A stretch of 63,908 bases of DNA, filler included, from Olpidium bornovanus S191 (taxonomy: Eukaryota > Fungi > Olpidiomycota), in the NCBI GenBank assembly GCA_017911155.1. It is 25 parts of 25 records of this genome, joined end to end, with 100 filler letters (N's around TTAATTAATTAA, not from the genome) between each part and the next. Parts side by side here need not be neighbours in the genome. Positions count along the whole stretch, not along the records: positions 16,582 to 19,722 come from JAEFCI010010951.1; 24 more parts are not named here. The stretch is one strand, 5' to 3'. The position numbers and the translations under genes were made by a program. Under the pieces are notes generated by a model. That model searched no databases. It was not told where the DNA came from and worked only from the letters and a program-made list of their open reading frames with translations. This document shows, piece by piece, positions 16,582 to 19,822 of the stretch (position 1 is its first letter; every line of letters starts with the position of its first letter).

Positions 16582-16633
<52 letters not shown>

Positions 16634-16885
16634 CCGGAATATATAATAAAACCACAGGCAAACAAAACAAAACCCGCCTTCCCACCTTCTCCTCCCCCCC
16701 CCTCCCGAATACAATCAAAACAAAAAAAAAAAAAAGTTTCTTTTTCGCCCTCTCTTTCTTCCTTTTCGGCTCGGCTTCAACCACACACTTTTTTGGTTTC
16801 TCTCTCTCTCTCTCCCCCTCCCTCTCTCTCCCCCTCTCCTCCAATTGGCCACGCGCGCTCGCCGGCCCTCGGCGACAGTCGGCCC

Positions 16886-19126
16886 ATGAAGCCCCGCGCC
16901 GCCCGCCTGCTCCTCCGACGAGCCGCCGCCGCCGCCGCCGCCGTCTTCGCCCTCGTGGCGGCGCCCGCGGCCGCCTCCTCCTCCTCCTCCTCCGCGGAAC
17001 AAGAAGACCTTCCCGCCGTGACGACCTTCCTCTACGAGGACAGCCCGCGGCCCGTGGACTTCGACCACCCTTCGCTGCTCCGCCTGGTTTCTCCGGAGCT
17101 CAGGTCCCGCTTCGCCGACGCCGACCCCGACCCCGACCCCGACAGCCCCGCCGGCAGATACGTGCGGAGGACCGCCGAGGCCGTCGCGCGCGCCGTCCAG
17201 CTCCGCAGCCCCGACCTGCTCCGCGACGAGTTCGAGGCCTGCTTCTGCTCCGGCCTCCTCAACTCCCAGTCGCTCGCGCTGCTCCGCTGCGGCCACGTCC
17301 TGCACGAGCCGTGCTTCCTGGCCCTGAAGTGGCCCCGCGTCTGCCCCAAGTGCCGCGACCCCGGCCCCCACGAGAACCGCGACCGCCCCGCCTTCCTCCG
17401 CGCCGCCCTGGCCTTCTTCGAGTCGGCCGGCTGGCTGCCGCCCCCGAGGATGTACCTGGACAGCCCCGAGCCCGTCGACCTCGACGACGGCGACCTGGCC
17501 GACTTCCTGCGCCGCGCCGACCGCGTCCGCCGGCTCGAAGGCCTCGCCGGCACGCCCGCGGACTCGGAAACCCTGCGCGCGCTGTCGATGCGGAGCCTCC
17601 ACGGCATCTACAAGCTGCTGGCCTGCCCCGTCTGCGTCCAGCACCTCAACTCCGCGACCGCCGTCACGCCCCCGTGCGGCCACCTCGCCCACGCCGCCTG
17701 CCGCCGCCTCGCCCTGATCGGCTCCATCGGCAGCTGCCGCCTCTGCCGCCCATCGCGGCCCGGGAACCCGGCGTGGCTGGGCGACGGCGTCTTCCGCAGC
17801 GCGCTGGAGGTGTTCGAGCGCAAGGGGTGGATCGCGATGCCGAGGCTCCACATACGGAGCCCGCTCCCTCTGGACTTGGGCGACCACCGTCTGGCCGCTT
17901 TCTCCCGCCGAGCCCTCGCCGCCGAGGCCGCCGCCGAGGCCGCCGCCGCCGGCCCCGCTCCTCCGGAGACCGCCCGCCCCGGCGACGGCGGCCCCGGCGG
18001 CTTGGTCGGATCGCGCCTCGGCCCCGAGGCCGGCGACCCCGGCCCGGCGGCGGCGGCGGCGGCCGGCCCCGAATGCTCCCTCCCGGCCGAGCTCGCCGGC
18101 GGCGGCGCGAACCGCTGGTCGGCCGCGGGCCTGGCCCGGGCCGTGGAACGCGCCGATTTCGACGCATTCCAGCAGGCAATCACCTGCCGCAACTGCGACG
18201 AGCCCCTGGATTCCGCGACGGTCGTCACCCTCCGCTGCGGGCACGCGACGCACGACGCGTGCTCCCGGCGGGTGGAGCCCTGCGCGCTGTGCCCCCGCGA
18301 GGGGCCGGCCCGGCGGCGCCGCCGGCCGTCCCTCCTGCGCGACATGCTGCGGCTTTTCGAAGACCGGCAGTGGCTCCCCGCGCCGCCGGCGGAAGCGCAG
18401 CCGCGCGAGGTCGGCGGCCTGTCCGGCGTCGACTTCGACGACCCGGACCTGCTCGCCCTCGCCCGCGCGCACCGGGGGCTCCCGCTCCTGCAGGTCGGCC
18501 GGGAGATCGCGGAGGCCGTGAGCGGCGCCGATCTCCCCGCGCTTGCCGACGCCCTGGAGTGCCCCTGGTGCTTCGAGCCGGTCCTCTCCGACACTTTGGA
18601 GCAGATGGAGTGCGGGCACGTCGCCCACCGGGACTGCCTCCCTTTCGACCGCTCGTGCCCCGTCTGCGCCGGCTCCTCCGCGTGCCGCGCGGACCCGGCG
18701 CTGCTCCGCCTGGACCACGGGTTCGTCGAGCAGACGCTGCGGCTGCTGGAGCGGAAAGGGTGGATCGTCCCGCCCCCGGACGGCGCCGGCGACACGTTCG
18801 AGCTGGCCCCGGCCGGCGTCGACATGTTCGAGCTCGTCCCGGCCGGCGTCAGCTTTTTCGATCTGGGCCCCGCGTTCGCGCCGCGCCGGACGGGCGACGA
18901 CGAGCCCCGCTCCTTCTTCGACCGGGAGGCGGAAACCGGCCCCGCCGCCGCGCTCCTCGACATGGGTCGCCGGCTCGCGAACCAGCTGCGCACCGAGTTG
19001 CGGTTCTCGCGGCGCGAAGGCGGCGGCGAGTCGTTCCCGGCCTCCGCCGACTCGCCGCGGAGCAGCAGCCCCGCAGACAGCCCGCTCGCGTCCGTGACGC
19101 CGTCGTACCCCGACTACGGCTTTTGA
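16886..19126 (+). CDS. Intronless 746-aa protein: predicted signal peptide plus four tandem RING-H2 modules (candidate secreted E3 ligase)
   Basis: ATG at 16886 to TGA at 19124-19126. N-terminus MKPRAARLLLRRAAAAAAAVFALVAAPAAA-S. Four C..C-x-CGHxxHxxC-x-CxxC motifs at about 17240-17353, 17624-17746, 18185-18292 and 18560-18667. Strong G/C bias at third codon positions in this frame. Confidence 0.88.
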   Translation: MKPRAARLLLRRAAAAAAAVFALVAAPAAASSSSSSAEQEDLPAVTTFLYEDSPRPVDFDHPSLLRLVSPELRSRFADADPDPDPDSPAGRYVRRTAEAVARAVQLRSPDLLRDEFEACFCSGLLNSQSLALLRCGHVLHEPCFLALKWPRVCPKCRDPGPHENRDRPAFLRAALAFFESAGWLPPPRMYLDSPEPVDLDDGDLADFLRRADRVRRLEGLAGTPADSETLRALSMRSLHGIYKLLACPVCVQHLNSATAVTPPCGHLAHAACRRLALIGSIGSCRLCRPSRPGNPAWLGDGVFRSALEVFERKGWIAMPRLHIRSPLPLDLGDHRLAAFSRRALAAEAAAEAAAAGPAPPETARPGDGGPGGLVGSRLGPEAGDPGPAAAAAAGPECSLPAELAGGGANRWSAAGLARAVERADFDAFQQAITCRNCDEPLDSATVVTLRCGHATHDACSRRVEPCALCPREGPARRRRRPSLLRDMLRLFEDRQWLPAPPAEAQPREVGGLSGVDFDDPDLLALARAHRGLPLLQVGREIAEAVSGADLPALADALECPWCFEPVLSDTLEQMECGHVAHRDCLPFDRSCPVCAGSSACRADPALLRLDHGFVEQTLRLLERKGWIVPPPDGAGDTFELAPAGVDMFELVPAGVSFFDLGPAFAPRRTGDDEPRSFFDREAETGPAAALLDMGRRLANQLRTELRFSRREGGGESFPASADSPRSSSPADSPLASVTPSYPDYGF

Positions 19127-19141
19127 TAGATTTTTCCCACG

Positions 19142-19230
<89 letters not shown>

Positions 19231-19822
19231 CGGCCCCCCCCCCCCCCCCCCCCCTTTTTTTTTTTTTTTTTCCCCCCCCCCCCCCCCCCCCCCCCCCTTC
19301 CCCGCCCCTCCTCCCTTCTCTCCCTTTCCTCACCCCCTCCGCCCCCCGCGCGCGTCTTGTAAAGGGAGCGCGCGCGCGCCCCGGGGGGCGCGGGGAGGGG
19401 CGCCAACCGGCCTCCCCCTCTCCGCGAATATATAGAATCCTCTCCAAGGTTTACATAGACAGAAACCGATCCTTCTCCCCTCCTTCCCCCCGCGCCGCCC
19501 CCTCAACCATAACCTTAGATTTTAGATAAAATAAAAAAAAAGTAGAAATTAGAGAGAGCGGCGGACGCCGGCCGAAGAAAAAGCTGGCGGGGGAGCGGGG
19601 CGGGGGGGAAGGGGGGGGGGGGGGGGGGGGAAAAATGTGTGCTGCCCCCCCTCCTCGGTCACGTGGCGCCCACGGCCAGAGGACAGCGCGAAATTGCCGA
19701 CACCGCGTTCATACAAAGAGCGNNNNNNNNNNNNNNNNNNNNNNNNNNNNNNNNNNNNNNNNNNNNTTAATTAATTAANNNNNNNNNNNNNNNNNNNNNN
19801 NNNNNNNNNNNNNNNNNNNNNN

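Follow-up and report, generated by a model that had tools for sequence, protein, structure and literature searches.

Can a protein that begins like a secreted one, and that carries four RING-H2 fingers without a membrane anchor, be a ubiquitin ligase (E3) meant for the cytosol of another cell? This question is raised by an open reading frame (ORF) in a stretch of 63,908 nucleotides (nt) from Olpidium bornovanus S191 (GenBank assembly GCA_017911155.1); by the window we mean this whole stretch of DNA, as it was analysed, and by the window protein the 746-residue product of the ORF, which lies in a piece spanning 16582-19722 of the window. We propose that the window protein is a secreted RING E3 ligase effector of the SPRING type, and we give the full chain of inference behind this proposal a probability of about 0.45. 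The proposal is built on a signal-peptide-like N-terminus that recurs in three homologues, with no later hydrophobic segment, and on four RING-H2 fingers, each of them part of a larger conserved module.

An intact, intronless gene

The 746-codon ORF is a real, intronless and intact gene. It runs from an ATG at 16886 to a TGA at 19124-19126, encodes 746 amino acids (aa) with zero internal stops, and has a GC content of 76, 57.5 and 94.4% at the first, second and third codon positions, respectively (GC1, GC2 and GC3). GC3 lies between 0.88 and 1.00 across all 150-nt blocks, those of the Ala/Gly/Pro linker and the C-terminal tail included, and because it is uniformly at least 0.88, we read the ORF as a single continuous coding frame, with nothing to suggest an intron or the fusion of gene models. 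The original prediction, made before the present analysis from the same DNA, had described an intronless ORF of 746 aa, and this description is borne out. No ATG was found in any frame in the 304 nt upstream of 16886; the frame is formally open upstream to the edge of the piece, through a stretch of poly-C and A-rich, CT-rich DNA that looks non-coding.

GC-rich DNA is known to yield long spurious ORFs, and two of these overlap the gene, one of 910 aa on the minus strand (16715-19447) and one of 683 aa on the plus strand in another frame (17311-19362). A word-indexed search of the protein collection found no homologue of similar length for the full-length protein, an exact-product look-up found no gene on record with exactly this product, and the window protein itself is not in the collection. 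These points would suit a chance frame in GC-rich DNA, or single-RING genes in tandem that were joined by artefact, a reading that is effectively refuted by the other evidence. The pattern GC3 > GC1 > GC2 is found only in the frame of the RING ORF, and the 910-aa and 683-aa ORFs, which have neither coding periodicity nor domain matches, were dismissed as artefacts of DNA with 75% GC. The RING frame has four significant Pfam RING matches, and a degenerate DNA pattern for the RING core plus a downstream E-x3-W gave 4 matches in the window against 0 in 200 shuffles. Homologues are found at E 5e-12 (phmmer) and 2.6e-26 (profile comparison); moreover, no stop or frame change separates the modules, and no signal peptide precedes any of the internal ones.

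Four RING-H2 fingers in a conserved module

Four stretches of the window protein match Pfam zf-RING_2 (PF13639; E 1.3e-13, 51.4 bits against a cut-off of 27.3 bits), and Pfam returned RING-clan families only, with no other domain in the protein. The four RING-H2 motifs named in the original prediction thus stand as Pfam stretches, although the strict C3H2C3 spacing (C-x2-C ... C-x-H-x2-H-x2-C ... C-x2-C) is kept in three of the four (RING2, RING3 and RING4), the first pair of RING1 being C-x-C. Each RING is embedded in a conserved module of ~120 residues, which comprises an acidic VDF motif, three helices, the RING-H2 finger, a long helix and the motif GW(I/L)xxP. In the four-copy alignment the order is VD(F/L)-D-x-x-L, a helical A-V...D segment, RING-H2, a Gly-Pro soon after the last Cys, and the helix end L-F-E-x-(K/R)-G-W-(I/L)-x-x-P, and the invariant non-ligand columns of the module family are the Gly of CGH, the Pro after Cys8, and the Leu and Glu of the L-x3-E...W helix. 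Identity from module to module is 27-37%, and in module 3 a low-complexity linker of ~75 residues parts the acidic segment from the remainder. The acidic VD(F/L)-type motif occurs in seven copies, three of which lie in the tail without a RING. The tail itself bears tandem repeats of 30 nt, or 10 residues, at 18784-18843 (aa 634-653), running on to ~18870, which are VDF-like and likewise lack a RING. Pfam matched neither the first 115 residues of the window protein nor its tail, nor the C-terminal halves of the homologues described next.

An exhaustive phmmer search of 1.84 billion cluster representatives returned 12 matches at E ≤0.001, of which nine share the RING core only. The whole module is shared by only three proteins, P0001/P0013 (384/393 aa), P0004 (614 aa) and P0008 (379 aa), all of them single-module proteins on transcript-length contigs from ENA and Logan assemblies. 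When the four window modules were compared with these three relatives by hhalign, the match reached 99.7% (E 2.6e-26) over 116 columns, from the VDF to the GW motif. Judged from these sequence matches, the VDF-RING-GW module family is real but extremely sparsely sampled. Homology and fold comparisons of the modules had been proposed with the original prediction, and they have yielded this whole-module family of three relatives, as well as the helix-flanked RING folds reported below. In P0004 (L005:68-1912), a stretch of ~45 residues is duplicated within the N-terminal region, and the module is followed by a long acidic tract of Ser, Glu and Asp. The C-terminal regions of the three homologues, each of ~200 residues, are helical and match nothing in Pfam.

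The other phmmer matches were rejected as relatives, only their RING core being similar: P0002, P0003, P0006, P0007 and P0009 are double-RING, tail-anchored proteins, P0005 and P0010 are unrelated arrays of 8 and 9 RING-H2 stretches, respectively, without a signal peptide, and P0011 and P0012 are single RING-H2 proteins. P0005 and P0010 show that multi-RING arrays as such are not unique to the window gene. A profile search and a search with the post-RING region returned the input proteins only. Protein queries found no relative in viral contigs or in JGI metagenomes, and prokaryotic genomes gave no match. The module DNA pattern matched four genes in the viral contigs, ordinary RING-H2 genes without the GW flank, and a single JGI sequence, a Pirh2-like gene of an AT-rich fungus; none was retained.

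AlphaFold2, given a seven-row alignment, modelled module 4 with a predicted local distance difference test (pLDDT) score of 86.7 and a predicted template-modelling score (pTM) of 0.79, as three N-terminal helices, the RING and a C-terminal helix of 20 residues; the VDF segment lies within the folded module of this model, at pLDDT 85-88. In a Foldseek comparison of the model with the PDB, helix-flanked RINGs came first (UHRF2, UHRF1, TRIM21, TRIM25, TRIM32, MSL2 and RING1B/BMI1), and among the viral structures of BFVD there was no significant fold match. A two-module model superposed on the TRIM21 RING with a template-modelling (TM) score of 0.66 (target-normalised), a root-mean-square deviation of ~3 Å and a probability of 0.99, and a fixed arrangement between modules is no more than possible. 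In a sequence-profile search of the PDB, only the RING core found matches, to genuine E3s such as RNF4, TRIM32, TRIM21, RCHY1, AMFR and RING2; the VDF and GW flanks match no solved structure in that search.

Three positions matter for the engagement of the ubiquitin-conjugating enzyme (E2), as in the RING-E2 complexes of c-Cbl and RNF4: the hydrophobic one before Cys2, the one after Cys7, and the linchpin. In this order the residues are Phe, Pro and Arg in module 1, Val, Arg and Arg in module 2, Asn, Ala and Pro in module 3, and Trp, Pro and Ala in module 4. All three single-module homologues have Arg/Lys at the linchpin; P0001 and P0004 have Ile/Val before Cys2 and Pro after Cys7, and P0008 has Ala after Cys7. 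Modules 1 and 2 look E2-activating because the basic linchpin and the hydrophobic residue before Cys2 are kept in them, and modules 3 and 4, from which the linchpin is absent, may be partner or substrate-binding units.

It is here that a second rival has to be weighed, one that we regard as quite improbable: the protein may be secreted and delivered as we propose, and yet not be a working ligase, its RINGs serving as E2-sequestering decoys or as scaffolds, and its VDF motifs mimicking host ligands. The irregular first zinc pair of RING1, the Asn of RING3 at the hydrophobic E2-contact position, the missing basic linchpin of RING3 and RING4, the seven VD(F/L)-type copies with three in a tail that has no RING, and the fast evolution of the family, with its low identity between modules, would all agree with such a role. 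However, three of the RINGs have the full set of eight metal ligands, and the fourth has seven of them together with a Cys that is shifted; the three homologues retain the linchpin Arg/Lys, and P0001 and P0004 also the residues flanking Cys2 and Cys7 given above; and the VDF segment is folded in the AlphaFold2 model, which is not what would be expected of a free linear motif.

A signal-peptide-like N-terminus without a membrane anchor

By heuristic features, the N-terminus of the window protein looks like a good signal peptide. Residues 1-12 include five Lys/Arg and zero acidic residues, residues 13-26 form an uncharged apolar core of 14 residues with a mean hydropathy of ~2.4, and Pro at -4 and Ala at -3 and -1 (A-x-A) are followed by a Ser run. 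The basic n-region, hydrophobic core and A-x-A site had been described accurately in the original prediction, and its statement that no transmembrane segment follows also holds: beyond aa 40 the maximum Kyte-Doolittle mean over 19 residues is 1.27 (the usual threshold being 1.6), and no hydrophobic anchor was found after the N-terminus by this hydropathy test, the only one applied to the point. A motif scan of the window protein, which used short definitions set by hand for these motifs and for the translocation motifs considered below, found neither a K/HDEL-type ending for retention in the endoplasmic reticulum (ER) nor an N-glycosylation sequon. RING ligands make up 24 of its 26 Cys, with two Cys elsewhere, and the protein therefore suits a reducing cytosol and not the state of a disulfide-bonded extracellular protein.

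The homologues begin in a similar way. In all three of their transcripts an in-frame stop lies upstream of the start ATG, so that the N-termini are complete. The gene call of P0001/P0013 starts 26 codons too late (L001:116-193, also L002:100-177), and P0001, when restarted at the first in-frame ATG of the transcript, which is preceded by an in-frame stop, gains a typical signal-peptide-like segment. The N-termini of P0004 and P0008 are short, weakly charged and strongly hydrophobic; the mean hydropathy is 2.1-2.4 at the N-termini of two of the three homologues, and no later hydrophobic segment was found in any of them. Because three homologues from independent transcript assemblies have signal-peptide-like starts, entry into the secretory pathway seems to be common to the family. 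As far as the sequences indicate, a signal-peptide-like start without an anchor is a conserved trait of the module family, and it supports entry into the secretory pathway. The soluble secreted RING array of the original prediction is upheld to the extent that the N-terminus, the lack of an anchor and the three like homologues speak for it; its N-terminus could also be read as a presequence.

This last possibility is the core of the main rival, an organelle- or membrane-targeted intracellular ligase, which we consider unlikely. The N-terminus would then be an organelle presequence, a membrane anchor (for example in the envelope of a mitochondrion or plastid), or a bipartite signal directing the protein to the periplastidial compartment, and the four RINGs would act in the cell that produces them. 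The periplastidial compartment of a complex plastid has a ubiquitin system derived from ER-associated degradation. The composition of aa 1-37, with five Arg/Lys, zero acidic residues and much Ala and Ser, is like that of presequences in algae and protists with GC-rich DNA, a motif for host translocation is absent, and a GC3 of 94% is also found in several free-living GC-rich algae and flagellates. The N-termini of the homologues, in contrast, have the short, weakly charged, hydrophobic form of typical ER signal peptides (2.1-2.4 in two of them), and aa 31-60 of the window protein, past the predicted cleavage site, are strongly acidic (7 acidic versus 1 basic residue), unlike transit-peptide-like regions. 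As for a membrane anchor, the basic residues before the core would, by the positive-inside rule, place the RINGs on the lumenal side.

A secreted RING ligase as the favoured reading

In the SPRING-type reading that we favour, the product would probably enter the ER by a cleavable N-terminal signal peptide and, without an anchor or a retention signal, would be released as a soluble protein. The mature form would be a string of four helix-RING-H2-helix modules, with disordered linkers between them and a repeat-bearing tail. The E2~ubiquitin that zinc RINGs require is found in the cytosol or the nucleus. Because a RING array has no E2 or ubiquitin partner in the ER lumen or outside cells, the cytosol of another cell, either host or prey, is the most coherent destination, and there the protein may recruit that cell's E2~ubiquitin. 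The original prediction had reasoned in the same way, and for the SPRING class this reading is the accepted one. Activation of the E2 would fall to modules 1 and 2, while modules 3 and 4 may act as partners without catalysis or bind the substrate. By analogy, this division of labour may parallel that of natural RING heterodimers, with one active and one inactive partner, and of engineered tandem RINGs. A bolder form of the proposal, which we hold to be rather doubtful, is that the window protein is the founding multi-domain member of an undescribed effector family: a secreted, self-sufficient poly-RING ligase whose modules would pair within the chain as active/partner pseudo-dimers. Once in a host or prey cell, such a ligase would act constitutively on the foreign E2~ubiquitin and would not need to oligomerise, and the acidic VDF segments would dock the array together.

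Several observations weigh against a secreted ligase. A regex scan found no RxLR, PEXEL/TEXEL or Crinkler-type translocation motif near the N-terminus of the window protein or of its homologues. The N-terminus is rich in Arg, Ala and Ser, with five basic and zero acidic residues, and resembles a mitochondrial or plastid presequence too, and the homologues come from unannotated (meta)transcriptome contigs. Within the fingers, RING1 reads C119-x-C121 and not C-x2-C, with Ala at the canonical position of the first Cys, and the basic linchpin is absent from RING3 and RING4. The fold matches of the whole module are weak (Foldseek E at least 0.04, TM ~0.4), and the two-module model of modules 3 and 4 has a moderate global confidence (pLDDT 77.5, pTM 0.59).

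Comparison with known RING proteins

Secreted RING proteins without a membrane anchor (SPRINGs) form a small but established class, described from several organisms. Plasmodiophora brassicae encodes several: yeast assays validated the signal peptides of PbRING1 and PbE3-2, both of which ubiquitinate themselves, and a host protease is the target of PbE3-2 (PMC8595600). In grape phylloxera, 138 SPRINGs were predicted, which are small, lineage-specific and fast-evolving (PMC6892190). Further examples are SPRING of Trypanosoma cruzi and Ts-RNF of Trichinella spiralis. The window protein, with its signal-peptide-like N-terminus, follows the architectural logic of this class (T. cruzi SPRING, P. brassicae PbRING1 and PbE3-2/3/4, the phylloxera SPRINGs and Ts-RNF), whose members have an N-terminal signal peptide and a RING, mostly of the H2 type, but no transmembrane segment. 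The members are specific to their lineages and evolve fast, and action in the host cytosol has been proposed or shown. The class is a functional one defined by architecture, not a homologous family, and no SPRING member was among the sequence relatives in the exhaustive phmmer search. Of the defining features, the window protein has the RING, the absence of a transmembrane segment (by hydropathy) and, by heuristic features, a probable signal peptide. As far as their architecture is described, the characterised SPRINGs carry one RING, against four in the window protein, where every RING is part of a conserved module of 120 residues; and secretion and E3 activity, which have been assayed for some SPRINGs, are predicted for the window protein. 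The original prediction had not recognised the architecture as a named fungal family; the class as such is a recognised one, with SPRINGs described in T. cruzi, grape phylloxera, P. brassicae and T. spiralis. Because secreted anchor-less RINGs are already known, the architecture of the window protein is not unprecedented; what is new is the VDF-RING-GW module, its four-fold tandem repetition in one chain, and the rarity of the family.

The best structural matches, the RINGs of TRIM21, TRIM25, TRIM32, UHRF1 and UHRF2, share with the module a RING core with N- and C-terminal helices. In TRIM proteins these helices mediate RING dimerisation, which activates E2~ubiquitin. Unlike TRIM and UHRF proteins, however, the window protein has no B-box, coiled coil, SPRY, UBL, TTD, PHD or SRA by Pfam, its fingers are RING-H2 where those are C3HC4, the Foldseek E-values are 0.04-0.3, and the VDF and GW(I/L)xxP flanks are absent from TRIM and UHRF proteins. 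Membership of the TRIM/RBCC family was accordingly rejected, since the only Pfam matches are to the RING clan and the likeness is limited to the helix-RING-helix fold.

Proteins of the PA-TM-RING/Goliath type (RNF13, RMR) and of the ATL type also combine an N-terminal signal or hydrophobic segment with a RING-H2 finger, but in them a transmembrane helix, accompanied in PA-TM-RING proteins by a lumenal PA domain, holds the RING in the cytosol. In the window protein a PA domain found no match even at E up to 1, and a second hydrophobic segment is absent; the original prediction had drawn the same contrast with PA-TM-RING proteins. An RBR ligase was rejected as well, there being no IBR match and the segments between the RINGs consisting of conserved helices, the GW motif and low-complexity linkers. 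So was an RxLR/Crinkler or PEXEL/TEXEL effector, in which a translocation motif would be expected within ~100 residues after the signal peptide, the regex scan having found none near the N-terminus.

More than one ligase domain per chain is found in the engineered linear RNF4 RING-RING fusion (PDB 4ap4/5ait), of which 4ap4 is the top PDB sequence match, over two stretches, and in Legionella LubX, which has two U-boxes and was a weak match in the fold search. The two domains of such a protein either make up an active dimer or share the work, one binding the E2 and the other the substrate. They differ from the window protein in having two domains and not four, in lacking a eukaryotic-type signal peptide, and in their flanks, which are not homologous. 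Tandem RING-H2 fingers are also found in P0005 (8), P0010 (9) and the double-RING proteins of the P0002/P0003 type; these have no signal-peptide-like N-terminus, some have C-terminal anchors, and none has the VDF...GW(I/L)xxP module.

Features of the gene and its flanks

Table 1. Positions in the window of the gene, its encoded domains and the elements of the flanking DNA.
Feature	Position	Strand	Description	Basis or remark
Poly-C tract	16582..16632	.	51 nt, reaching the piece edge, directly upstream of the TATA-like element	Promoter-proximal role putative
TATA-like element	16637..16650	+	GAATATATA then AATAAA, ~250 nt upstream of the start codon; putative core promoter	Predicted
ORF	16886..19126	+	Intact, 746 codons + TGA; signal-peptide-like N-terminus, four RING modules, low-complexity tail	ORF, Pfam and codon statistics
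Signal-peptide-like segment	16886..16975	+	aa 1-30; basic n-region, 14-residue apolar core, P-A-A-A before Ser run	Heuristic; homologues share the feature
Module 1	17051..17449	+	aa 56-188; VDF motif, helices with Pro/Asp-rich insertion, RING1, helix, GWLPPP	
RING1	17240..17356	+	aa 119-157; RING-H2 with non-canonical C-x-C first pair; Arg at linchpin after Cys8; Pro after Cys7	
Module 2	17471..17842	+	aa 196-319	Module alignment
RING2	17624..17746	+	aa 247-287; canonical C3H2C3; linchpin Arg	
Acidic segment and linker	17870..18121	+	aa 329-412; third acidic VD(F/L) copy, then ~75-residue Ala/Gly/Pro low-complexity linker	GC3 at least 0.90, so coding
Module 3, RING-proximal part	18122..18385	+	aa 413-500	
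RING3	18185..18292	+	aa 434-469; canonical ligands, 6-residue Cys6-Cys7 loop, linchpin Pro, Asn before Cys2	
Module 4	18428..18778	+	aa 515-631; modelled module	AlphaFold2 and fold matches
RING4	18560..18667	+	aa 559-594; canonical ligands, 6-residue Cys6-Cys7 loop, linchpin Ala	
C-terminal tail	18779..19123	+	aa 632-746; three ~10-residue VDF-like tandem units, then low complexity	
Homopolymer block	19142..19297	.	C88, C21, T17, C26, starting 16 nt past the stop codon	
Second TATA-like element and leader	19426..19637	+	TATA-like 9-mer 19426-19434, two TTAGAT motifs 19515-19527, G20 run, ATG 19635	

The TATA-like 9-mer of 16637-16645 recurs at 19426-19434, each copy following a C-rich tract; no ATG lies between the first copy and 16886, and the second stands ~210 nt upstream of the ATG at 19635. 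The stretch 19426-19637 probably represents the promoter, leader and start of the next gene, cut by the edge of the piece. From the ATG at 19635 an Arg/Pro-rich frame of 29 codons runs to that edge (19722), possibly the start of the neighbouring gene.

Long homopolymers surround the gene (C51, C88, C21, T17, C26 and G20, the last at 19611-19630), in which real length and assembly artefact cannot be told apart. The C-run on the left and the G-run on the right form a low-complexity 'inverted repeat' of ~48 nt that we read as composition and not as terminal repeats of a mobile element. Sub-threshold matches to Rfam microRNA models in the low-complexity 3' flank were put down to chance. Literature on poly-C intergenic tracts and on RINGs in chytrid secretomes offered nothing usable.

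At the 3' end of the P0008 contig (L008:1225-1350, minus strand) a long C-run like that of the window leads into an alternating TA element. The two together may reflect a promoter architecture common to related organisms, and the similarity hints at a kinship of the organisms. A T(T/A)TAGA(T/C) motif stands, often twice, in the 5' leader of each of the three homologue transcripts (L002:34-47; L005:3-9; L008:18-41). In the window this motif occurs twice at 19515-19527, probably in the leader of the next gene, and it is absent from the 5' flank of the RING ORF.

Significance

Secreted RING ligases are an emerging route by which eukaryotic parasites rewire host ubiquitination, one that is convergent across lineages and for which few families are known. 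The finding of three relatives among 1.8 billion protein clusters implies that the lineage to which the module belongs is poorly sampled. Should the N-terminus prove not to be a secretion signal, the window protein would simply be an unusual multi-RING ligase of a very GC-rich protist. If the secreted-effector reading is true, the four-module array would show effector diversification through internal duplication of a conserved, foldable unit of 120 residues, and it would provide a natural test case for RING pairing, and for the partnership of active and inactive RINGs, within one chain.

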